A stretch of 45,802 nt of DNA from Dicyema japonicum. Lineage: Eukaryota; Animalia; Dicyemida. Position 1 is the stretch's first letter; every line of letters begins with the position of its first letter. Position numbers and translations under genes: made by a program. The stretch lies in NCBI GenBank assembly GCA_011109175.1, contig RDEW01000008.1:971558-1017359 (forward strand), read 5' to 3'. Of the stretch, positions 2,711 through 43,349 are shown one piece after another. Below the pieces are notes generated by a model that was given only the letters and a program-made list of their open reading frames with translations, searched no databases and was not told the origin of the DNA.

Positions 2711-3093
2711 TATACTAAATATATAAAACCGACAATCGGCTACTGCTGTGCGGCATGGGCACAAACCTATCCAATACGAACCTAGAGAAAATCAACGTCT
2801 TACAAGAAACAGTCACGAGGACCCTACAAAGGTTCTCCTTTTCATCACTAATGCCAACTCCCTTCGAGGAGCTTGTTAGGAGAACGGGAGTCCGACTGCC
2901 ATCTCCGAAATCCTGTAAAATGTCTCGTACGTACAGGAAGTTTCACATTGAACAGTCACGAGGACCCTACAAAGGTTCTCCTTTTCATCACTAATGTCAA
3001 CTCCGTTCGAGGAGCTTGTTAGGAGAACGGGAGTCCGACTGCCATCTCCGAAATCCTGTAAAATGTCTCGTACGTACAGGAAGTTTCACATTG
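2711..3093 (+). mobile_element. Decayed LINE (APE-type) fragment, region C-terminal to the RT core
   Basis: Translates as YTKYIKPTIGYCCAAW, then after a frameshift TNLSNTNLEKINVLQETVTR, matching the LY...RP.LEY...W.P.....+EK+Q pattern. 2808-2950 is duplicated at 2951-3093. Confidence 0.6.
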
Positions 3094-4710
3094 AAAGAAA
3101 CTTTCATCCAATCTTGAATGGCTTCAGGTATAGTACTTTTGAGAGAAGTATCTAATTTTGATCGGCATTTATAAATTGGAGTACTAAGGAGACACAATTT
3201 TTCACGACTATACTTGAATCTGGGTACTTGATGAAACCAACTTACCTTACATTTTCCATTCTTACGGGAAGAACTAAGATAAAGCTTTCATCCAAAGTGA
3301 AGTGGATATTCGGCGATAGTAGTACGTCACAACCTCACCTGCTTACCAATTAACCTAATTGGCCGTTAAAATAATAAACAAAAAACATTTTGCTTCAGAT
3401 GCTGAACAGTATATGTGCTTTTGAGAGAACGGGTTGATTTTGAAATCCAAGTCTCATTTTGATCGGTTTATGAATGCTAAATAATACTACATAAGAGGGG
3501 TGCAAGTGTGCCGCGTATAGAAACTACAAAGAATAAGTTGAAATCAATTATTCTTTGATCGAACTTGAGAGAACGGGTTGATTTTGAAATCCAAGTCTCA
3601 TTTTGATCGGTTTATGAATGCTAAATAATACTACATAAGAGGGGTGCAAGTGTGCCGCGTATAGAAAATACAAAGAATAAGTTGAAATCAATTATTCTTT
3701 GATCGAACTCCTCGGTTTCAACGCTGGGATAAGAAAAGATCCGACAAGATGACTATTTTTTAATTTTTTCCATGAAAAATATGATGTCTCGACTCATTCA
3801 CTGCTACTTCAAAATATCTACTGTGCTGAACAGGGGTAACTAAAGATTACACGTCGTCCAATCGGCCGAGAATCTCGGAGCTGTTGTGAAAATAGGTAAA
3901 CGGGTTGGCAAAGAAATTAGCAATTGCGTNNNNNNNNNNNNNNNNNNNNNNNNNNNNNNNNNNNNNNAATTTTTTCCATGAAAGATCCATCGCGTCGAAT
4001 ATGATGTCTCGACTCATTCACTGCTACTTCAAAATATCTACTGTGCTGAACAGGGGTAACTAAAGATTACACGTCGTCCAATCGGCCGAGAATCTCGGAG
4101 CTGTTGTGAAAATAGGTAAACGGGTTGGCAAAGAAATTAGCAATTGCGTAACGACTTATGATTTACATGGGGTGTCGTTACTTAACTTTGACAAAATGAA
4201 AATCAATTTATTTAAAAAATATTTTATTTAACAATAAAATATTATTTATTAACTATGGGGGAGAACGGCTGCTGACATTGCGGAGTAAGCGTTTCCGCAG
4301 ACAACTGCGAACCAAATTCGTTGGCTCGGCCAGACTGCTTCCCGCAGGTAGAGACATACAGTAGACACTACAACCCAAGGTGACTCATCCTAATTCTTGT
4401 GATCAGTCAATTGATAAATAAATTTTAATCTGAAAGTCCTTAAAGCTGCAGACAACTGCGATCCAAATTCGTTGGCTCGGCCAGACTGCTTCCCGCAGGT
4501 AGAAACATACAGTAGACACTACAACCCAAGGTGACTCATCCTAATTCTTGTGATCAGTCAATTGATAAATAAATTTTAATCTGAAAGTCCTTAAAGCGCA
4601 AATAAATTACGAAACTCCCATTTCGACTCATAATCTCACTTTGATCGAATCTGCTAACACTATGATCAAATTTTCCACAAAACAAAGGGAAATTTATTTC
4701 AATAAAAACA

Positions 4711-7607: not shown

Positions 7608-9010
7608 ATGAAAACACATCAACGAATACTGGGAGTGATCCTGGACCTCTTGCTCTCTTTATCCCAACAAGTGAAGGACGGCATTCAGAAACTTAACGTC
7701 ATCAAAACATTTCTGCACTACAAGACCCAGCCGTCACAAGAATGCGTTGCCGTCTTGTACTACCAGCTTTTAAAGCCGACGCTGGAGTGCCAATTCTCTG
7801 CTCAACTATTCNNNNNNNNNNNNNNNNNNNNNNNNNNNNNNNNNNNNNNNNNNNNNNNNNNNNNNNNNNNNNNNNNNNNNNNNNNNNNNNNNNNNNNNNN
7901 NNNNNNNNNNNNNNNNNNNNNNNNNNNNNNNNNNNNNNNNNNNNNNNNNNNNNNNNNNNNNNNNNNNNNNNNNNNNNNNNNNNNNNNNNNNNNNNNNNNN
8001 NNNNNNNNNNNNNNNNNNNNNNNNNNNNNNNNNNNNNNNNNNNNNNNNNNNNNNNNNNNNNNNNNNNNNNNNNNNNNNNNNNNNNNNNNNNNNNNNNNNN
8101 NNNNNNNNNNNNNNNNNNNNNNNNNNNNNNNNNNNNNNNNNNNNNNNNNNNNNNNNNNNNNNNNNNNNNNNNNNNNNNNNNNNNNNNNNNNNNNNNNNNN
8201 NNNNNNNNNNNNNNNNNNNNNNNNNNNNNNNNNNNNNNNNNNNNNNNNNNNNNNNNNNNNNNNNNNNNNNNNNNNNNNNNNNNNNNNNNNNNNNNNNNNN
8301 NNNNNNNNNNNNNNNNNNNNNNNNNNNNNNNNNNNNNNNNNNNNNNNNNNNNNNNNNNNNNNNNNNNNNNNNNNNNNNNNNNNNNNNNNNNNNNNNNNNN
8401 NNNNNNNNNNNNNNNNNNNNNNNNNNNNNNNNNNNNNNNNNNNNNNNNNNNNNNNNNNNNNNNNNNNNNNNNNNNNNNNNNNNNNNNNNNNNNNNNNNNN
8501 NNNNNNNNNNNNNNNNNNNNNNNNNNNNNNNNNNNNNNNNNNNNNNNNNNNNNNNNNNNNNNNNNNNNNNNNNNNNNNNNNNNNNNNNNNNNNNNNNNNN
8601 NNNNNNNNNNNNNNNNNNNNNNNNNNNNNNNNNNNNNNNNNNNNNNNNNNNNNNNNNNNNNNNNNNNNNNNNNNNNNNNNNNNNNNNNNNNNNNNNNNNN
8701 NNNNNNNNNNNNNNNNNNNNNNNNNNNNNNNNNNNNNNNNNNNNNNNNNNNNNNNNNNNNNNNNNNNNNNNNNNNNNTACAATGAAAACACATCAACGAA
8801 TACTGGGAGTGATCCTGGACCTCTTGCTCTCTTTATCCCAACACGTGAAGGACGGCATTCAGAAACTTAACGTCATCAAAACATTTCTGCACTACAAGAC
8901 CCAGCCGTCACAAGAATGCGTTGCCGTCTTGTACTACCAGCTTTTAAAGCCGACGCTGGAGTGCCAATTCTCTGCTCAACTATTCTCCCTTTACTCTAAA
9001 ACGCTACAAT
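7608..9010 (+). mobile_element. Decayed LINE RT C-terminal fragment, duplicated across an N gap
   Basis: ILGVILDLLLSLSQHVKDGIQKLNVIK...LYYQLLKPTLE matches the LGV.LD..L.F..H...LY...+P.LE pattern. 7605-7811 is repeated from 8778 after the gap at 7812-8777. Confidence 0.6.
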
Positions 9011-11345: not shown

Positions 11346-11766
11346 ATGATGTTTGTTATGTGACTAATTTTCGTTTAGTGACAAATCAATTCCGTTGAGA
11401 GATAGGCCAAGGTCGATGCTGACTGAGGAGGAGATAGCTGAACTGGAGAAGGAAGAATTTGAAGTCGGTCCTCTGAGTCTTCTTACTCAGGCAGTCCGCC
11501 AGAACAAACAAGTCTTAATAAGCTGCCGAAACAACAAGAAACTGTTAGCCAGAGTGAAGGCATTTGACAGGTTAGCCATTCTTTGGTCATTCAGGCACTG
11601 TAATATGGTTTTGGAGAACGTGAGGGAAATGTGGACTGAAATGCCTAAAACAGTTGCGAAAGGACAGAAAGCGAAGCCGACAAATAAGGACAGATACATT
11701 TCTAAGATGTTTCTGAGGGGCGATAACGTCATTGTGGTTCTCAGCAATCCTGCTGCTTCTTTGTGA
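11346..11766 (+). CDS. SNRPD2: Small nuclear ribonucleoprotein Sm-D2, about 122 aa
   Basis: [15 protein letters not shown]...[16 protein letters not shown]|[15 protein letters not shown]...[18 protein letters not shown] is canonical SmD2. The 24-nt intron 11571-11594 removes the LAILWSFR insert. The start at 11346 with a 28-nt intron (11351-11378) is less certain. Confidence 0.93.
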
Positions 11767-13683
11767 TTTTCTTAGTTATTAATTTTTCTTGTTTTTTAGA
11801 TTTTACTTTATTTGTTAAGTAGTCGCGAATACTTAGTTAATTAAGGCCACGTGTCTCTGTTATTTCAAGTTTATTATGAATGGTAGTTGCTTGAATAAAG
11901 ATTGACTGGTTGTTGCGTAAAGGATTTAAAAATACCTTGTATGGGATTCGAATTCGGGACCTATTTTGCTTTTATTCATTAAATTTTAACTTAGTTAAGT
12001 TATCACGGCCTAGCGAACAAGTAGGAGACCTCAGCTATTATGTGGTGGTCGCTTCTATAAATCGGTCACTTTAGGAATGGTAGATAAGTCAGAGTGACCT
12101 GGGAACGACAAACGAAAGGATGAGGACGATGGGCATTATGTATTACCTCTTTCATTAAGTATGCTGTCACATCGTATTTTTAGCAGGTTTCAATGTATTT
12201 AAGTTGTATGTTATGCTACTGTATCTCCCCTATTGAAACGTAGGAAGAGAAATCCTGATAATTCTTGTGGAACTCTAATCTTCGCTTTTCATTACTCAGA
12301 TCCACAGCCGGTTTAACTCGAAAAAAAATTCAATAGCTATTCTACACAATTTTATCAAATCGATATGATCTTATCCTTCCTCATTTTTGTAGATGATTAA
12401 AGGGAGGATTATCTTTGGGAAAATAGATAGCATAGATTCACTTCCAGTCCCGACTTGGGGAGATTTCACGAAACTTGATAGACTTTTTTCCCCAACATCT
12501 CCTTTGAAATCTATTTTATATCCAATCAGTAGTACTTAGTAATGTAAGAGATTGTCGTTGTTAATTGGGTGAAGGCAACTTGATGGGGGTACTTCATGAT
12601 ATTAGTAAAGCACACATCGTTTTTTTAAGGTAGACTAATTTAGATCTTCCATTTATACATTTTTTTCAATACAGCTCATTCACTCTAAAAATCCTTCATT
12701 TCGAAGGATTTCGTTTCTTTGATATGTTTGAATTGAAATCACCATCATTAGTAAGCAGATCTCATTCTTTCTTAATATTTGTATTAAATGGCCTTCGTCT
12801 GCTATCCCTCGTCTTCTGTGTCTCCCTTCTTTTTGATAGGAAAGAATGCGATTACATTCCTAGAAACCAGAGTCTTTTCCTCTGACGGGGTTGAAAACAA
12901 ATTATCTACCAGATGTTGTTTAGTTTAGAAACTCGGTTGTCGTTGAAGTCAATCCTGGGAAAGTTGGAGTAATCTTAAGGTTCCACCCTGTAAAATGCAA
13001 AGAGTTCGCATTCAAGCGAGTTCTTCCACAAATTCTTCTGCTATTTAGAAAATGAAATATAACTCACATCAACTTTCTAAATTTTAAATTATTTGTTTGA
13101 CATAGCCCAATTGTATATTGTAATTAAATCAGGAGACGTTACATATTACTATAGAGAAATTTATACGGTAATGGATATTGTCAATTAAGAAAATCATGAA
13201 TTTACTCATCATAGTCTTGATGAAATATGTAATCTAAACAATTTCAGAAATAAAGTGGGTCTTACCAAAAGCAAAGTGGTTCTTACAAAAAGCAAAGTGG
13301 AAAGAAAATATTTTTGTGTTATAGGGTGAAGAAATGGATATTGTCAATTAAGAAAATCATGAATTCACTCATCATAGTCTTGATGAAATATGTAATCTAA
13401 ACAATTTCAGAAATAAAGTGGGTCTTACCAAAAGCAAAGTGGTTCTTACAAAAAGCAAAGTGGAAAGAAAATATTTTTGTGTTATAGGGTGAAGAATAAT
13501 TGCAATAGTAGGTTCATAATTTCTGGCTTATCAAAAGACAAAAGAGCAAACTTTATATTAGAAAAAATAGAATTTCATTAATCTGAATATCATTTGCAAA
13601 AAATTCGTTTCAAAAATATAGTTTTTATAAAATAAAAAAAAAATTCAGTAAATGAGTAAAAATGATTCTTGTGAGAAAAATAC

Positions 13684-13756
13684 GGCCCCGTGGCCTAGAG
13701 GATAAGGCGTCTGGCTTCTATCCAGTTGATCGTGGGTTCGAGTCCCACCGGGGTCG
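13684..13756 (+). tRNA. tRNA-Arg, anticodon TCT, intronless
   Basis: 73 nt. Acceptor stem GGCCCCG/CGGGGTC, D stem GCCT/AGGC, anticodon loop CTTCTAT, T loop GTTCGAGT, G discriminator. Confidence 0.85.
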
Positions 13757-23245: not shown

Positions 23246-24609
23246 TTAAGAATTGCCGAGAAGACATTCTCTCTCGATATTAACGGGCAAGACGTCGAAG
23301 AGGAGTTCTTCGAACCTATCCAAATCACAGAGTCTTCCACAGCCTAAATAAGGAATAAAAAACACCTGGAATTTGTAAAAAATTGATCTTCTTGTTGTTT
23401 AGCCTGTAGACAATCCGGACGTACCACGTGTCTTGAATTTCGTGGAGTTCATAAAAAAGACAAGAAGCGAACTCCGGGAAGGTTCCATTGAAGACTCCCA
23501 TCGCTCCCAAAAGGGACATAATGGTGAAATCGTGCTGAAATAAGATTAACCTTAACTCCAGAATAGATCACTGCTTTTCCTGGAATGCCTGACTTGTTCG
23601 CTCGTCTCCCCTTCATAGAATCAATGATCTTTTTCAAAATCGGCCCTTTTAAGTAAACTGGGACTTTAACCTCCACGTAGTCGTTTCAGTTTTTTGTTGT
23701 TGTTGAATAACACGTGCTTCAAGGAAGCTATCTCCTTCATTTTCTTAACAGTTGATTCATCCAGCCATTCGGGCATCGATAAATCCTCCGCCTCCTTAAA
23801 ATCACACAAAAAGAGACATCGCACAAAATGTTACTCCAAATTCTGAGAAAGCCGTTCAAGGATCTGTTAGAAAATCCAGCGAGCTTTGAGATTTTCGATA
23901 TGAAGTCCTTCCTAGTGAAATCAGGGGATCTACTTTGTTTTCTTCTTCGATTCTTTTCACGACTGGATTTAGCTTGTCCGCGAGACGAAAATATTGGGGA
24001 CACGGATATCTCATATCAATAATCTGGATGATTCAATCGATTTACCTGATCTTCATTTTTTGGAATTGTGTGAACTGGAATGGGTCTCCAGGTGAGATTC
24101 GAATTCCGGACACGGATATCTCATATCAATAATCTGGATGATTCAATCGATTAACCTGATCTTCATTTTTTGGAATTGTGTGAACTGGAATCGGTCTCCA
24201 GGTGAGATTCGAATTCCACATTTGATCTCCTGATGGGGGATACAACCCGGCCAGATTTGCCAAAGCGCTCATTATCGTCCGTTCTTTATCGGAGGACAGC
24301 ACTTTCACCTCCGACAAATTGTAGGGATTTAAAAACGGGTAAGTTTTTCTGATATATCGTCCCAGCCGGTATTGCATTAAAATTCCATTCTAACGGTTAA
24401 TGCAGTGAAAACGTTTGTTAGCTGCTTAAATCCCTGTTTCCAGTGTTCGAAATGCTTATTTGACGGGAAAAGGTGGGAAGGGCTTCTTGCTCCATGTCGG
24501 TAAATCTAAAGTCCGTGCAACCACATACGATGTTTAGATATTTTAGAGTTTTCGAATTTTGGCAATTTGTGGCAGCAAATGCTAGGGAAATGAGGTATAA
24601 GGCTATCAT
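23246..24609 (-). CDS. Secreted histidine acid phosphatase (lysosomal/prostatic type), about 355 aa
   Basis: Signal peptide MIALYLISLAFAATNC. Catalytic IYRHGARSP and YSG|HDFTI motifs appear only after removing 8 introns: 24506-24528, 24390-24412, 24134-24155, 23908-23933, 23795-23817, 23646-23670, 23535-23556, 23344-23365 (22-26 nt). After also removing the 110-bp duplicate the CDS is 1068 nt in frame. Confidence 0.9.
23998..24217. repeat. 110-bp tandem duplicate inside the phosphatase CDS (likely assembly artefact)
   Basis: 23998-24107 and 24108-24217 differ at 2 positions, with no N between them. The duplicate would frameshift an otherwise intact gene. Confidence 0.8.
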
Positions 24610-25099
24610 CGTAAGGTTAATCAGTGATTAGAACGATATCAGAATATTTAATAAGTTATCAGGACTTGATTACGGCCTGGGTGGGGCTCAATCTCTATGA
24701 ACACAAAATGTGGAACTAGTAGACCCCAGTTGATTTACTTATACTTAACTTCACACAGTTTATATGTTTTTGACTTTTATTGCCTCCAACAGAAATCTCT
24801 GTTGTCATATTTCTCTTCCTCGTCATTGGATCCACACTAATNTTTAGAGTTTTCGAATTTTGGCAATTTGTGGCAGCAAATGCTAGGGAAATGAGGTATA
24901 AGGCTATCATTGTAAGGTTAATCAGTGATTAGAACGATATCAGAATATTTAATAAGTTATCAGGACTTGATTACGGCCTGGGTGGGGCTCAATCTCTATG
25001 AACACAAAATGTGGAACTGGTAGACCCCAGTTGATTTACCTTTATTTAACTTCACACAGTTTATATGTTTTTGACTTTTATTGTCTCCAACAGAAATCT

Positions 25100-25310
25100 C
25101 TGTGTTGTCATATTTCTCTTTCTCGTCATTGGATTCACACTAATCAGGAGATGCACAATATCTGGATTGCATTCAAAAGGATCCATCTCTTTATTCCCCG
25201 GGAGACTATTTCGCTCCCTAACGACGAGTTCTGGTTTCGACTTCAGCTTCCCAAGACAATGTCCTCTGGATCATTGAAAGTTCTACAGGAAAGCATAGGA
25301 TCACGGGAAG
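25100..25310 (-). repeat. Dispersed repeat family X, copy
   Basis: Reverse complement reads GATCCAGAGGACATTGTC..GGAAGCTGAAGTCGAAACCAGAACTCGTCG...GTCTCCCGGGGAATAAAGAGATGGATCCTTTTGAATGC...AATCCAATGACG. A short plus-strand partial copy follows at 25415-25490. Confidence 0.7.
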
Positions 25311-36200: not shown

Positions 36201-37922
36201 CATAAAAAAACTGGTAGATAAAGTTCTCATATGTTATTTTCCATCATAACCCCGGGAAATCGATAAGTTTTTGCGTATTTCCATTGCGCAAAATGACTAC
36301 TTCGTTTCATGACAGGTGAAGGCCCTTGTCATCGATCCCCTTGTGAAAGTCTACGGCGGAACGGACTATACCGTGACATCAAGTGTGTCCAAGTGGCAGA
36401 AGGACTATTACCCTCACGGGTGGGGTCTGGTTGACATGAGCTGCTATTTACTAACCGAGCCCTGAGAAGGTCCAATACAGAACTTGCTTTTTATGAATAT
36501 ATTCGTTTTACCGTCTAATTTGTTCATCTTTGCAAATTCTGATTCAAGACCGAGGATTACGACTTCGTGCTATATAAAAAGTCAACACTGAGCTTTGTGA
36601 TCGACGTAGCATGTACGTCCTCAGCTTGGTCGCAAAGTTGGTTAGCGATATGCGATATTGTTGAAAATATTGACTTTATTTATAACAACGTCAATTTGGC
36701 ATAATTTACGGATATGTTGTATAAATCTATAATTTCACGTGCTACATCGGCCATTCCATCATCTTGGCCCTAATGCTCTTTCATCGATCCTACAAATGCA
36801 CGCATCGGTCGAGTGATCGGACCTTCGCATCACGACGGCGCGTTCCATAGTTCATTCGTATCAAAGCTTCAAGTGGGAATGGTGGCTGGAACTCTCCAGA
36901 AATCGTGCGTTCTGTGATTACGGAGGCTCTCATAAGCATCTAGCTACNNNNNNNNNNNNNNNNNNNNNNNNNNNNNNNNNNNNNNNNNNNNNNNNNNNNN
37001 NNNNNNNNNNNNNNNNNNNNNNNNNNNNNNNNNNNNNNNNNNNNNNNNNNNNNNNNNNNNNNNNNNNNNNNNNNNNNNNNNNNNNNNNNNNNNNNNNNNN
37101 NNNNNNNNNNNNNNNNNNNNNNNNNNNNNNNNNNNNNNNNNNNNNNNNNNNNNNNNNNNNNNNNNNNNNNNNNNNNNNNNNNNNNNNNNNNNNNNNNNNN
37201 NNNNNNNNNNNNNNNNNNNNNNNNNNNNNNNNNNNNNNNNNNNNNNNNNNNNNNNNNNNNNNNNNNNNNNNNNNNNNNNNNNNNNNNNNNNNNNNNNNNN
37301 NNNNNNNNNNNNNNNNNNNNNNNNNNNNNNNNNNNNNNNNNNNNNNNNNNNNNNNNNNNNNNNNNNNNNNNNNNNNNNNNNNNNNNNNNNNNNNNNNNNN
37401 NNAGGATACTCCATCCCGCATCAAAATATCCATGACGGCGAATCAACGAAAGTGATCTAAAGTCTTGGATTCAAAAGATTCTAGAGAGTTCTTTACCGAA
37501 TTAAAAAATCAACGATTTCGTATAATTTTAAAAATCGTAAAACCTGTTTTTGCAATTATCTCTGCAACTTTGTATGAATAAAATAATCCAGAAACATTTT
37601 TAAATATATTTTTATTAAAACTAGAAATTAAAGTGTTTTTATTTTAATAATTCTTTTTTAATTCAAAAAAATTCTGATTTTTTTTCTAATTGTAATTCTG
37701 ATTTTCTAAATGTTCGATTGAGCGCGATGGCTTCATCGCCTCATTGGAAAATATTGTACCACATTGCAAACAAAGCGGTTTATAAAGAACCTGAGGATTT
37801 TTAATAAATTAAAAAAAAGATATTCCTCTTTATTGGTTCAAACTTTTTTTAAACAAAACTCATCACGAAGTATTAGAAATCACGCTAATAATTTTAAATG
37901 AATTATTATTATTATTGAATCA

Positions 37923-38329: not shown

Positions 38330-39330
38330 CCACTGCTATACGACATGGTAAATCGTTTAGGAATATATTGAATAGCGCTGGAGAAATGGGCGATCCTTGA
38401 GGGACGCCATTTGGTAGAAGACGGGACCTCGATCTAGCATAGCCTACACAAACACGTCCTTTTCATCTGTAAAAAATTGGCTATCCATCTTTTCAATCCA
38501 GTTGAATAGTGGTGTCAAAAGCCTTTTTTTGTGAGTAATATTCTCGGGACAGAATCGAACGCCTTCTGGATGTCCAGAGAAACCAATCTTGTCCTTAGCG
38601 TTTCGGTTCGTTGAATCCTTCTGATATAAATTGAGACAATGAAGTCAAATGTGTCGTAGTTGAACGCACACTTTTGTATCAATGTTAAAGTGGCAGTCGG
38701 GAAAATGGGGTTTGATTTTACGGAGTACGAGTTTCTTCATTAAGCGCGATAATGCGCACGTCAATGAAATTGGACAGTAGGAAGAAGGTTAGGTTTCCAG
38801 TTTTCCTGGTTTTTAAAAGGGGTATTATAAGTGAGTTCTTCCATTTGCATGGGATGACGTTCTGTTAGAAGACAAATTAAAAATTGACGTAGTCGAATTG
38901 ATTGCAACATGGTCGAATTGACAGCAAAAGGTGTTTAAGCAAAATTCTCGAAGTACCGTCAGGACCAGACGTATAAGATCTCTTAGGACAGAATCCCTGC
39001 GGTGGAATTTAAATGTTGATTAGAATAAGATGTTCTGACCCATTAATAAGATCAATAGAAATTTGTTCCGCGATCCTGTCGTGTAGAATAAAATCATCCA
39101 CTTGCGAGCTCACATAGTGGAAGGATAAACCGTTTATAATAATGGTAAGTAATCCGCCACCACGTCCAATACGGTCTTTTCTGATAGAGATGTATTCAGG
39201 AAAAAGTGGGGTTGATTTCTTTGTAAAAAGTTTAGACTCCTAGATAAGGCAAATGTGAATATTATGCTTCGATAATAGACATCGTAACTCCAAAATCTTT
39301 GTTTTTATTCCGTTAGCATTGATATGCATA
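38330..39330 (-). mobile_element. Internally deleted, decayed LINE ORF2 (APE endonuclease plus RT)
   Basis: HINANGIKTKILEL...IHICLI*ESKL...RKDRIGRGGGLLTII (APE domain); TSGPDG, IPCKWK, WIANFL and PNGVPQGSPISPALFNIFLNDLP (RT domain); multiple stops and frameshifts. Confidence 0.85.
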
Positions 39331-39850
39331 ATAACAAGGGGTTTTGGTCCATTGTATGTTCAATATCTCCAGAAAGCAATATAATCCACGGGAACAAACA
39401 ACATTTCGAGTTTCCAGTTGAGGTAAACCATCCAGACATGAAGATTAGGAAGAGAAAATAATTCTTTTTGATTTTATTAGACACAGCGCCACCATAAAGG
39501 TGAACCACATGACGCCACACTAACATTATTCCAAAATGAAGATCTAATCATAAATTAGGTTATATGGATCAACGAGAAGGGTTATGGCTAAGACAAAAGA
39601 TCGGAATAGCCATACTCCGAGGGAACTCGTTAGCAATCCACGCAGCAGGCTTCCTCAACTGACATTTGTTTAATTGTTATAAAAAATTTTGTTAATAGAA
39701 AAAAAAAATTAGGTTAATTAATTCATAAGTTACATATTAAACTTTTTTTAATAACTTAATTTATTTTTATAAAATAATTATTAGATAAATTAATTTTATT
39801 ATAATAATTTTTTATAATTAATTATTCATGAATAATTAATAATTTAACTA

Positions 39851-42800
39851 ATGATCTTTATGATTGGAGGTTTGTTTGAATTTAATAATTTTGTAGAAAT
39901 TGTGTTGTTTTTCGGTTTAATTCAACTTGAAATCACTACTGAACTGTTATTAAATCAAGTTCCAAAGTGGATCATTCGCGTACATAACAAATTTTCTATA
40001 TTTGTTTCTGGGGAAATTTACGTATCGATTAAAAATAATGAATTAGTAAGTGAATATCATAGTAGTAGAATCGAGTTATTAATTTCAACAAGGCAGAAGT
40101 CAATTTTGTGAAACGAAGAAAAAAAGAGTTCTACATCAAACTTGAATTTGAAAATACAATTGTTGGATTTGAAATCAATGTGGATTCTAATTTTATTAAT
40201 CTAAAACAGATTTATGTTAATGTTTTCGGTATGTGATATTTTAGATACTAGATTTTGGTGATTTTGATGCATTAGTTAATCAAACTTTTTTGATTAAGAA
40301 ATATTATTTTTGTCATATTTTTCAATTGGACTATATTGGAATTATTGTTTACATATTCAATTTACAACTACAAGTATCTCAAACATCTGGAATTACATCA
40401 TTTTCTGGAACCGGTTATATTTATAATAATTTTAAGCTGATTTTTGCAATAAAAATCTGTTGCGTAATGAACCTATTGAACAAATATTCGGTACTGTAAG
40501 TTGTTTTATTAATATTTATTTTCTTTTATTTTTATAATATTTTTAGAACACCCAACAACTAGATCCACGACTAAAACTGAAGGTAAATATTTTAATTTCA
40601 TATTTCAAAATTCATGCAATAATATAATATTCTTATTCATAGAATTGGACAATATACATACTCCGACAAGTACAACTGAAGGTACAATATCTTCAATAAA
40701 TGATTAATCAATTCATAAAATTAAATGTTAGATTTAACTACAGAATTGGGCACTACACCAGCTCCGACAAAAACAACTCTAAGTACAATATCTTCAATTA
40801 ATGATTAATAAATTCATAACTTAAATGTTAGGGTTATTTTCATTTTTTGCCATTACACGAACTCCCACAAGAACAACTGAAGGTAAATATCTTCAAATTA
40901 TGATTAATCAATTCATATAATTAAATGTTAGATTCATCCACAGAATTGGCCACTACACCTACTCCCACAAATACAACTGAAGGTACAAAATCTTCAAATT
41001 ATGATTAATCAATCATATAATTAAATGTTAGATTCATCCACAGAATTGTCCACTACACCAACTCCCACAAAAACAACTGAAGGTACAATATCTTCAATTA
41101 ATGATTTATCAAATCATAAACTTAAATGTTAGATTCATCAATAGAATTAGCCATTACACCTACTCCGGCAAGTACTACTGAAGGTACAATATCTTCAATT
41201 AATGATTAATCAATTTATATAATTAAATGTTAGATTCATCAATAGAATTTGCCATTACACCTACTCCTGCAAGTACTACTGAAGGTACAAAATCTTCAAA
41301 TTATGATTAATCAATCATATAATTAAATGTTAGATTCATCCACAGAATTGTCCACTACACCAACTCCCACAAATACAACTGAAGGTACAAAATCTTCAAA
41401 TTATGATTAATCAATCATATAATTAAATGTTAGATTCATCCACAGAATTGGCCACTACACCAACTCCCACAAATACAACTGAAGGTACAAAATCTTCAAA
41501 TTATGATTAATCAATCATATAATTAAATGTTAGATTCATCTACAGAATTGGCCACTACACCAACTCCCACAAGTACAACTGAAGGTACAATATCTTTATT
41601 AATGATTAATCAAATCATATACTTAAATGTTAGATTCATCCATAGAATTGGCCACTACACCTACTCCCACAAGTACAACTGAAGGTAAAATATCTTCAAT
41701 TAATGATTAATCAATTCATATACTTAAATGTTAGATTCATCCACAGAATTGGCTACTACACCTACTCCCACAAGTACAACTGAAGGTAAAATATCTTCAA
41801 TTAATGATTAATCAATCATATAATTAAATGTTAGATTCATCCACAGAATTGGCTACTACACCTACTCCCACAAGTACAACTGAAGGTAAAATATCTTCAA
41901 TTAATGATTAATCAATTCATATACTTAAATGTTAGATTCATCCACAGAATTGGCCACTACACCTACTCCCACAAATACAACTGAAGGTACAAATGTTAGA
42001 TTCATCAATAGAATTGGCCATTACACCTACTCCCACAAGTACAACTGAAGGTAAAATATCTTCAATTAATGATTAATCAATTCATATAATTAAATGTTAG
42101 ATTCATCCACAGAATTGGCTACTACACCTACTCCCACAAGTACAACTGAAGGTAAAATATCTTCAATTAATGATTAATCAATCATATAATTAAATGTTAG
42201 ATTCATCCACAGAATTGGCCACTACACCAACTCCCACAAATACAACTGAAGGTACAATATCTTCAATTAATGATTAATCAATTCATATACTTAAATGTTA
42301 GATTCATCAATAGAATTAGCCATTACACCTACTCCGACAAGTACAACTGAAGGTAAAATATCTTCAATTAATGATTAATCAATTCATATACTTAAATGTT
42401 AGATTCATCCACAGAATTGGCTACTACACCTACTCCCACAAGTACAACTGAAGGTAAAATATCTTCAATTAATGATTAATCAATTCATACACTTAAATGT
42501 TAGATTCATCCACAGAATTGGCCACTACACCAACTCCCACAAATACAACTGAAGGTACAAAATCTTCAAATTATGATTAATCAATCATATAATTAAATGT
42601 TAGATTCATCCACAGAATTGGCCACTACACCAACTCCCACAAATACAACTGAAGGTACAAAATCTTCAAATTATGATTAATCAATTTATATAATTAAATG
42701 TTAGATTCATCTACAGAATTGTCCACTACACCTACTCCCACAAATACAACTGAAGGTACAAAATCTTCAAATTATGATTAATCAATCATATAATTAAATG

Positions 42801-43349
42801 TTAGATTCATCCACAGAATTGGCCACTAAACCAACTCCCACAAATACAACTGAAGGTACAATATCTTCAATTAATGATTAATCAATCATATGATTAAATG
42901 TTAGATTCATCCACAGAATTGGCCACTACACCTACTCCCACAGATACAACTGAAGGTAAAATATCTTCAATTAATAATTAATCAATTCATATACTTAAAT
43001 GTTAGATTCATCAATAGAATTAGCCATTACACCTTTTCCGGCAAGTACTGCTGAAGGTACAATATCTTCAATTAATGATTAATCAATTCATATAATTAAA
43101 TGTTAGATTCACCCACAGAATTAGCCACTACACCTACTTCCACTACTACATTTGAAGGTAAATGTTTTAATCCAACATATAATCATTTTATTATCTTTAT
43201 TTGAAGATCCGAGCATAACAAGTTCAACAATTAACACTAATTTGATAGTAAGCATGCATGCACGAAAATTCAGTACTTCATCCGTTTCTCGTCCAGTGGA
43301 AGTAACATTCCTCCTACTTGGATGGATTTTAGTTAACATACTAATTTAA
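39851..43349 (+). CDS. Putative GPI-anchored mucin-like surface protein, about 678 aa, 33 exons
   Basis: Introns 39870-39896, 40046-40068, 40229-40251, 40414-40436, 40491-40546, 40583-40642, then repeat introns. Signal-like N-terminus MIFMIGEIVLFFGLIQ; globular region of about 160 aa; 25 exons of 51 nt (consensus DSSTELATTPTPTSTTE); last exon 43207-43349 ending in hydrophobic VTFLLLGWILVNILI*. Summed exons are 2037 nt, in frame with no internal stop. Confidence 0.82.
40682..43157 (+). repeat. Tandem array of about 100-101 bp intron+exon units (25 units)
   Basis: Each unit is a 49-50 nt intron GTA(A/C)AA(T/A)ATCTTCAA...TTAAATGTTAG plus a 51-nt exon ATTCATCCACAGAATTGGCCACTACACC(T/A)ACTCCCACAA(G/A)TACAACTGAAG. 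One unit has a 13-nt intron (41987-41999). Confidence 0.95.

Follow-up and report, generated by a model that had tools for sequence, protein, structure and literature searches.

A tandem repeat array in the genome of Dicyema japonicum probably forms the middle part of a coding gene, in which each repeat of the encoded protein is specified by its own small exon. The gene is located on contig RDEW01000008.1 (assembly GCA_011109175.1), in a stretch of 45,802 nucleotides (nt) corresponding to positions 971,558 to 1,017,359 of the forward strand, in the following termed the window. It extends over positions 39851–43349 of the window on the plus strand and would comprise 32 exons encoding 687 amino acids (aa), probably a stalked, mucin-like surface or secreted glycoprotein. 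The array, its splice-site dinucleotides and exon phases, a single open frame, the in-phase link of this frame to the unique sequences on both sides and the composition of the repeats can be read directly from the DNA. In the original prediction the apparent 2.5-kb satellite was interpreted as an intron-exon array, and the sequence logic supports this view, since the array fits into one spliceable open reading frame (ORF) of 687 aa.

Organization of the repeat array

Tandem Repeats Finder (TRF) delineates an array with a period of 100/101 base pairs (bp) between positions 40641 and 43162, made up of 13.5 and 11.6 copies with about 90% matches. A pattern scan for AG, 51 nt and GT yields exactly 25 units, which start at 40732, 40832, 40932 and so forth up to 43107 and span 40732–43157. 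Both dinucleotides are kept in all 25 units, and the 51-nt segments contain neither an insertion or deletion nor a stop codon in phase 1. Pattern scan and frame count confirm the predicted set of 25 exons of 51 nt, each of phase 1-1 and bounded by GT...AG. Introns had been expected to measure 49 or 50 nt throughout, which fails once, at a junction where only 13 nt lie between two exons (Table 1). The two halves of the unit are distinguished by their composition, G+C making up 41% of the exon sequence and 18% of the intron sequence. Each AT-rich half starts with GTA, ends with AG and contains no other AG. In total, 18 distinct exon and 17 distinct intron sequences are present in the array.

Phase 1 is the only frame of the plus strand that stays open through all 25 exons, and the consensus exon read in this phase gives the 17-residue repeat DSSTELATTPTPTNTTE. 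Joining of the exons results in a concatenate without any stop in phase 1, compared to 12 stops in phase 0 (IHPQNWPL...) and 25 in the remaining plus-strand frame. One frame of the reverse-complemented concatenate is stop-free, but the unit boundaries on that strand are not GT-AG, and the reverse-strand reading was rejected. Without splicing, the longest stop-free stretch of the array does not exceed 51 aa in any of the six frames. Any protein encoded by the array consequently needs the AT-rich halves to be spliced out.

Additional in-frame AG and GT motifs are situated inside the exons. An AG at exon nt 11–12 (CACAG or AATAG) is found in every 51-nt exon with the exception of the diverged unit 40832. 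Exons of the Ser type, which carry an AGT codon, contain the sequence GTACAA at nt 40–45, in frame and 12 nt before the exon end, which is identical to the true donor hexamer. The A/G difference that separates Asn-type from Ser-type units also switches an NTT N-glycosylation sequon on or off.

Within the introns, the first three and the last eleven positions (GTA ... TTAAATGTTAG) are invariant among the 21 canonical introns, while 13 of the 36 other positions vary (P=0.0065, for a set of positions chosen post hoc). GTA and AG are also invariant in the aligned diverged units. At the upstream end of the array, the exon parts of the diverged units are 15 and 12 nt shorter than the regular exon, each difference being divisible by three, and the introns of the diverged end units measure 56, 60, 50 and 49 nt. 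These multiple-of-three differences provide a small piece of added evidence for selection on the reading frame. The invariant intron ends agree with the reduced splice signals of D. japonicum and myxozoans, which consist of the motifs "GTa" and "AG" together with an A-stretch upstream of AG (PMC13644364).

Connection of the array to the flanking exons

Starting from the ATG at 39851, the array is reached in phase via three 23-nt GT-AG introns, one 56-nt intron and the two diverged repeat exons. Start codon, stop codon (43347–43349) and the exon at 40437–40490 are located where they had been predicted. In dinucleotide-preserving shuffles of 39851–40490, a stop-free path to the required phase was obtained in 0 of 1000 cases, even if four introns of 15–60 nt were permitted, whereas the real sequence offers nine open paths with no more than three introns of 20–30 nt. 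Clearly, then, the sequence 5' of the array has the character of an ORF and enters the array in the matching phase. After splicing, the model comprises 687 codons without a stop. Exons of 36–54 nt with phase 1-1 account for 28 of the 32 exons and for 1404 of the 2064 coding nt, and the length of the introns ranges from 13 to 60 nt.

Ultra-short introns are also encountered in a gene of known type. An SmD2-type LSM gene at 11395–11766 on the plus strand (PF01423, E-value 3.7e-13) harbors an in-frame GT...AG intron of 24 nt at 11571–11594, which is inserted between AFDR and HCNMVLENV, in a conserved stretch. With this support from homology, ultra-short introns in the window are real, and the ordinary introns of this genome are about 23–24 nt long. 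Formation of a hairpin that would shorten the 49–50-nt array introns to an effective 23 nt was rejected, with z-scores between -1.1 and +0.9 and no significant RNA structure. Similarly short introns are carried by myxobolid myxozoans (PMC13644364).

Table 1. Features of the predicted gene, in window coordinates.
Feature	Position	Strand	Remarks
Putative promoter or 5' untranslated region	39680–39850	+	7.6% G+C; in-frame stop directly before the ATG
Exon 1	39851–40045	+	195 nt, phase 0-0, starts with the ATG; residues 1–26 hydrophobic
Intron 1	40046–40068	+	23 nt, GTAAGT...TAG; two weaker alternative solutions
Exon 2	40069–40228	+	160 nt, phase 0-1; within the unrecognised N-terminal region
Intron 2	40229–40251	+	23 nt, GTATGT...CTAG; two alternative solutions
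Exon 3	40252–40413	+	162 nt, phase 1-1; within the N-terminal region
Intron 3	40414–40436	+	23 nt, GTTATA...TTAAG; sole intron at this junction in 9 of 9 open paths
Exon 4	40437–40490	+	54 nt, phase 1-1; followed by a 56-nt intron
Diverged repeat exon 5	40547–40582	+	36 nt, EHPTTRSTTKTE; in-frame 15-nt gap relative to the 51-nt unit; followed by a 60-nt intron
Diverged repeat exon 6	40643–40681	+	39 nt, ELDNIHTPTSTTE; begins at the position where the 51-nt exons have their internal AG
Array	40732–43157	+	25 exons of 51 nt, phase 1-1; 24 introns, all 49 or 50 nt long except one (13 nt)
Anomalous "intron"	41987–41999	+	13 nt, GTACAAATGTTAG; internal deletion of about 37 nt
Last intron	43158–43206	+	49 nt; interior diverged from the array introns, GTA and AG kept
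Last exon	43207–43349	+	143 nt, entered in phase 1, TAA at 43347–43349; beyond 8 codons only phase 1 is open
Possible alternative intron	43248–43273	+	within the last exon; its splicing would leave a hydrophilic protein end, ...YFIRFSSSGSNIPPTWMDFS, in place of the hydrophobic tail
Hydrophobic C-terminal tail	43302–43346	+	last 15 residues VTFLLLGWILVNILI, after S-T-S and the 7-residue spacer SVSRPVE; by inspection

Predicted protein

The predicted polypeptide is composed of an N-terminal region of 190 aa, a repetitive stalk of 451 aa and an end of 46 aa following the repeats. The N-terminal region includes a hydrophobic segment, contains two Cys residues and is encoded by very AT-rich codons. 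Its hydrophobicity peaks at residues 14–28 with a 15-residue Kyte-Doolittle maximum of 2.05, and residues 1–26 resemble, in an atypical form, a signal peptide or a signal anchor. In the stalk, which is built from 27 units of 12–17 aa, Ser and Thr together contribute 50.6% and Pro 11.3% of the residues. Cys is absent from the stalk, and its isoelectric point is 4.05. Being made of tandem repeats rich in Pro, Thr and Ser (PTS), the stalk conforms in composition to the mucin type. Nine NTT sequons are distributed over the stalk, Asn-type units containing and Ser-type units lacking them.

Signals for the attachment of a glycosylphosphatidylinositol (GPI) anchor are characterized by small residues at the attachment site and at position +2, a polar spacer of about 5–10 residues and 15–20 hydrophobic residues reaching to the end of the chain. 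By inspection, the C-terminus matches this layout, with S-T-S, the spacer SVSRPVE and 15 hydrophobic residues, in line with the GPI-type tail that had been proposed for the last exon. GPI anchoring of the predicted protein is thus plausible.

Divergence and homogenization of the units

Divergence per site amounts to 6.1% in the exons and 5.4% in the introns of the array. The 26 distinct exon variants comprise 9 synonymous and 17 non-synonymous changes and no stop, the possible single changes being distributed as 42:103:5, and about 0.9 stops would be expected. The statement that exon variants never introduce a stop or an indel therefore holds for all 25 exons, but does not go beyond chance. 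Only three indel events are found in the array, all of them in introns. Since exon variants are linked to particular intron variants, whole units must have been copied recently, and the intact frame of the array largely reflects this copying. The array alone makes a weak case for coding, and a selection test within it is uninformative because the units have been homogenised too recently. Variants derived from reads in exons 1–4 (4 synonymous, 9 non-synonymous, no stop) are likewise uninformative with respect to selection.

Evidence against the gene model and alternative explanations

Several observations weigh against the gene model. Exons 1–4 have a G+C content of only 26%. The array shows no sign of purifying selection, exon and intron parts being equally diverged and the ratio of non-synonymous to synonymous changes being about 0.8, which is near neutral. 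The 13-nt intron breaks the simple model, and its retention would shift the frame and bring in a stop, first at residue 456. In the last exon, the consensus-looking 26-nt intron candidate (GTAAGC...TTCAG) would delete the C-terminal tail. The signal-like N-terminus described originally is indeed hydrophobic, but as a signal peptide it is atypical, with no basic n-region, two Glu residues inside the segment and no clear -3/-1 cleavage site. Moreover, the reads found for the locus are genomic only and contain no spliced joints, and a search restricted to RNA libraries listed no run.

The N-terminal region, in agreement with its description as an unrecognised domain, has no relatives in any of the searches, all of which were run exon by exon. 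No match was obtained in Pfam with exons 1–3 and the last exon (E-value up to 10), in a word-index search of 5.8 billion proteins with the exon-1 ORF, or with exon 2 in a full HMMER search of 1.84 billion representatives and in the sequences of the PDB. An Atlas search with exon 3 gave a best score of 0.77, which is noise, and paralogues within the window were not detected by tblastn or blastn.

The four runs containing the locus, all from one sample (2019), are identified as genomic DNA by Nextera adapter tails and by contigs that are colinear with introns and intergenic DNA. Genomic reads at 39650–41100 neither support nor refute splicing. According to the alternative that survives best, although we consider it rather unlikely, array size and odd junction are products of the assembly, the true unit number being different and the 13-nt intron non-existent. 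The window is part of a gapped draft with runs of N at about 7800–8780 and 36950–37420. Sequence is duplicated across the first of these gaps, an identical ORF start (MKTHQRILGVILDLL...) lying before it at 7608 and behind it at 8782. Between 2808 and 34570, about once per 3 kb, 16 tandem duplications of exactly 2.0 copies are found (for example 2808–3095, 3421–3709, 4297–4597, 13170–13496 and 24540–25144), with a period of 85–301 bp and 90–99% identity. In appearance these duplications resemble contig ends or haplotypes that were left unmerged, but they could also be genuine. In addition, TRF scores 41826–42158 as a duplication of 165 bp in two copies, with the 13-nt junction at its centre, and the reads are polymorphic, most pieces being 95–99% alike. 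In a draft of this kind, neither the number of units nor the 13-nt junction can be regarded as secure, and the latter may be an assembly error. On the other hand, the summed word depth of canonical units relative to unique exons, a rough and poor measure of copy number, is about 15–29x in run X1, which agrees in order of magnitude with the 23 canonical units of the assembly. Errors of this kind would touch the copy number only and not the exon-intron design of the unit.

Even if the odd junction is genuine, it need not abolish the gene. Combination of the donor at 41987 with an AG at 42010–42011 gives a 25-nt intron of the size usual in this genome, followed by an in-frame exon of 39 nt (42012–42050), which starts with AATTGG in the same way as exon 6.

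Two variant forms were observed among the read contigs. In one of them (depth 680 in run X2 and 43 in run X4), 40819–40953 (135 nt) is replaced by 37 letters, which results in a 51-nt intron followed by a hybrid exon that is still 51 nt long and open (KLFSFFSITPTPTNTTE). This form represents either an allele that is one unit shorter or a gene-converted allele of unit 40832, the contig ending too soon to distinguish the two. The second, a low-depth form present in all four DNA runs at about 5% of the local depth, joins 39934 to 40480 on opposite strands. It covers 39855–39934 with a 1-nt deletion at 39884 and three substitutions, and stems from a partial copy of the 5' exons, either rearranged or paralogous, elsewhere in the sample.

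An improbable reading of the array is that of a dead gene or a non-coding minisatellite, whose unit descends from an exon-intron pair or resembles one by chance. Such an origin would account for the equal divergence of exon and intron parts, for the neutral appearance of the variants and for the frame-shifting 13-nt segment in one unit. It would also fit the empty result for RNA libraries, the lack of homologues of the N-terminal region in the exon-by-exon searches, and the location among transposon remnants and a high-copy repeat. A dead array, however, is hard to reconcile with the in-phase 5' path, which none of the 1000 shuffles reproduced, with the joining of the single open array frame by both unique flanks, and with a total of 687 codons free of stops. 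Furthermore, indels of the old, diverged units keep to multiples of three in exon sequence but not in introns, no variation is seen in the splice dinucleotides or at the 3' end of the introns, and the one defective unit is rescued in frame by the 25-nt intron.

Slightly less credible still is a real gene with another product, namely a secreted mucin generated by splicing of 43248–43273, a protein of 13-residue units encoded by 39-nt exons between introns of 61–62 nt, or a protein retained by an uncleaved N-terminal signal anchor. The alternative intron in the last exon has a good donor and the length typical of the genome, but chance GT-AG pairs 21–28 nt apart are common in AT-rich sequence. 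The presence of AG at exon nt 11–12 in all units but 40832, together with the 39-nt exon 6 starting exactly there, would allow 13-residue units. However, the acceptor of the 51-nt exons is the first AG after the invariant TTAAATGTTAG, the 12 nt in dispute have exon-like G+C content and synonymous variants, and unit 40832 with no internal AG needs the upstream acceptor. For the signal anchor speaks the N-terminal hydrophobic stretch with its unclear cleavage motif.

Proposed mechanism

In the gene model favored here, the minisatellite unit of 100–101 bp would equal one 51-nt exon of phase 1-1 plus one GT-AG intron of 49–50 nt and would encode the Thr/Ser/Pro-rich, acidic stalk. With ordinary introns of about 23–24 nt, exon and intron together are short enough for minisatellite-like copying and homogenisation. 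Whole units may be copied and homogenised by unequal crossing-over or gene conversion. If the gene is transcribed, splicing would remove the AT-rich half of each unit and restore the 17-residue repeat. The product is predicted to enter the secretory pathway, where the stalk could become heavily O-glycosylated, and to be held at the cell surface by the C-terminal GPI-type signal. The N-terminal region of about 165 residues would thereby be presented at the tip of an extended stalk, as in stalked surface adhesins and coat proteins.

Because every repeat exon has phase 1-1, any subset of exons can formally be skipped or recombined in frame, as had been pointed out before. Variability in isoform or stalk length by exon skipping or recombination is plausible from this arrangement, and the product might, as originally proposed, act as an antigen. 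A more far-reaching proposal, put forward tentatively and on balance unlikely in its full form, is that of a "spliceable minisatellite". In an animal with introns of about 23 nt and GTa...AG signals, a 100-bp exon-intron pair would change its number by minisatellite dynamics. In combination with the in-frame sites 12 nt inside the exons, this could generate a surface mucin at the interface with the host that differs from one individual or cell to the next in stalk length, in unit length (13 or 17 aa) and in N-glycan sequons (NTT versus STT).

Comparison with known systems

The original prediction regarded the array as an undescribed system, which does not hold, since tandem micro-exon mucin-like genes are documented in Schistosoma. 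The underlying premise that PTS repeats are usually encoded in one large exon applies to most mucins, but not to those of parasitic flatworms, where SmPoMuc and the micro-exon genes (MEGs) deviate from it. In the polymorphic mucins of Schistosoma mansoni (SmPoMuc), a 27-bp exon 2 resides in a genomic repeat of about 1 kb, which is present in up to about 20 copies (PMC2576457). Between these units, the intronic parts share more than 94% identity, and polymorphism arises through frequent recombination and variation in splicing (PMC2576457). As in SmPoMuc, the gene described here would place each repeat of a mucin-like protein of a parasite on its own symmetric micro-exon within a tandem genomic repeat. 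This resemblance, judged by the published description, is one of architecture only. In SmPoMuc, the unit measures about 1 kb and its 27-bp exon encodes 9 aa, as opposed to a unit of 100–101 bp with a 51-nt exon (17 aa) and a 49–50-nt intron in the present gene. Moreover, the repeats stand between a unique N-terminal region and a short hydrophobic tail, and neither the 27-bp exon 2 nor the conserved C-terminal region of SmPoMuc is found.

MEGs consist of symmetric micro-exons of 3–81 bp between ordinary terminal exons, with introns of 0.1–5 kb (bioRxiv 10.1101/2023.06.21.545858), and the family is described as specific to Schistosomatidae (PMC3723592; bioRxiv 10.1101/2023.06.21.545858). Differential splicing of the micro-exons makes MEG proteins variable. 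Among its members, MEG-4.1 (Sm10.3) carries Thr/Pro-rich repeats, whose O-glycosylation was confirmed experimentally (PMC3723592). By its title, the study of Davis et al. 1988 (cited in PMC3723592) describes the MEG-4.1 gene as having tandemly repeated exons encoding 81-base repeats. For MEG-14, a signal peptide and a membrane anchor at the C-terminus are described in addition to an O-glycosylated repeat region (PMC3723592). The present gene shares with the MEGs the predominance of symmetric micro-exons with lengths divisible by three between ordinary end exons (28 of 32 exons) and the hydrophobic N- and C-termini around a hydrophilic centre. In contrast, its introns measure only 13–60 nt, and while MEG proteins are small with few repeats, it encodes 25–27 repeats and a large non-repetitive N-terminal region of 190 aa. 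Given the short introns and the missing specifics of SmPoMuc, the gene is best regarded as an analogue rather than a member of these families.

Homogenization of exons together with introns has a parallel in spider silk genes. As summarised in PMC1885213, successive introns of Nephila Flag and Argiope MaSp2 are near-identical, the exon-plus-intron modules being homogenised by intragenic recombination. Linked and equally diverged exon and intron variants are likewise found in the present array; however, the silk modules are far larger and encode a structural fibre protein instead of a PTS-rich glycoprotein. With regard to protein layout, the predicted order of elements matches that of the GPI-anchored fungal adhesins Flo and Als and of other stalked GPI proteins. 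Such proteins display a signal, an N-terminal domain, Ser/Thr-rich tandem repeats of unstable copy number and a GPI signal. Their repeats are contained in a single exon, and the match does not imply homology.

The gene probably represents a variant, new and unusually compact, of a design known from parasites, from which it differs in scale (a 100-bp module), unit number, domain order and lineage. If transcripts confirm the model, it would be the most compact exon-per-repeat mucin known to us, with exon and intron of about equal length and the pair acting as a 100-bp minisatellite. The route taken by schistosomes, from micro-exons to variable glycosylated surface or secreted proteins, would then also exist in a further parasitic lineage, where it arose independently or was inherited from deep ancestry. 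Affinities of dicyemids to flatworms have been reported (PMC6736024), and a literature search for a link between Dicyema and a mucin gene of this kind retrieved none. Such a gene would further provide a test bed for a minimal-signal spliceosome, which has to pair 25 near-identical donors and acceptors spaced by 50 nt without skipping. In the annotation of D. japonicum, repeats occurring more than 30 times were masked (PMC6736024). Genes of this type are easily masked as satellites, and host-interface proteins may for this reason be systematically missing from the gene sets of such genomes.

Surroundings of the gene

The G+C content of the window is 34%, which fits D. japonicum, as do the gaps, the LINE remnants, the 23–24-nt introns and the Nextera adapters of the 2019 runs (PMC6736024; PMC13644364). 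A very high-copy repeat reaches up to about position 39698, close to the 5' end of the gene. Its summed word depth is 70,000–686,000, compared to values between a few hundred and about 12,000, according to the run, in the adjoining bins. This repeat is probably a family derived from the tail of a short or long interspersed nuclear element (SINE or LINE). Further upstream, a weak reverse-transcriptase remnant with the motif LDIQKAFDSVP is located at 38515–38682 on the minus strand (RVT_1, E-value 0.036). At a greater distance, the window contains an exon fragment of a histidine phosphatase at 24126–24377 on the minus strand (His_Phos_2, E-value 1e-13) and a tRNA gene at 13684–13756 on the plus strand (Rfam RF00005, 63 bits).

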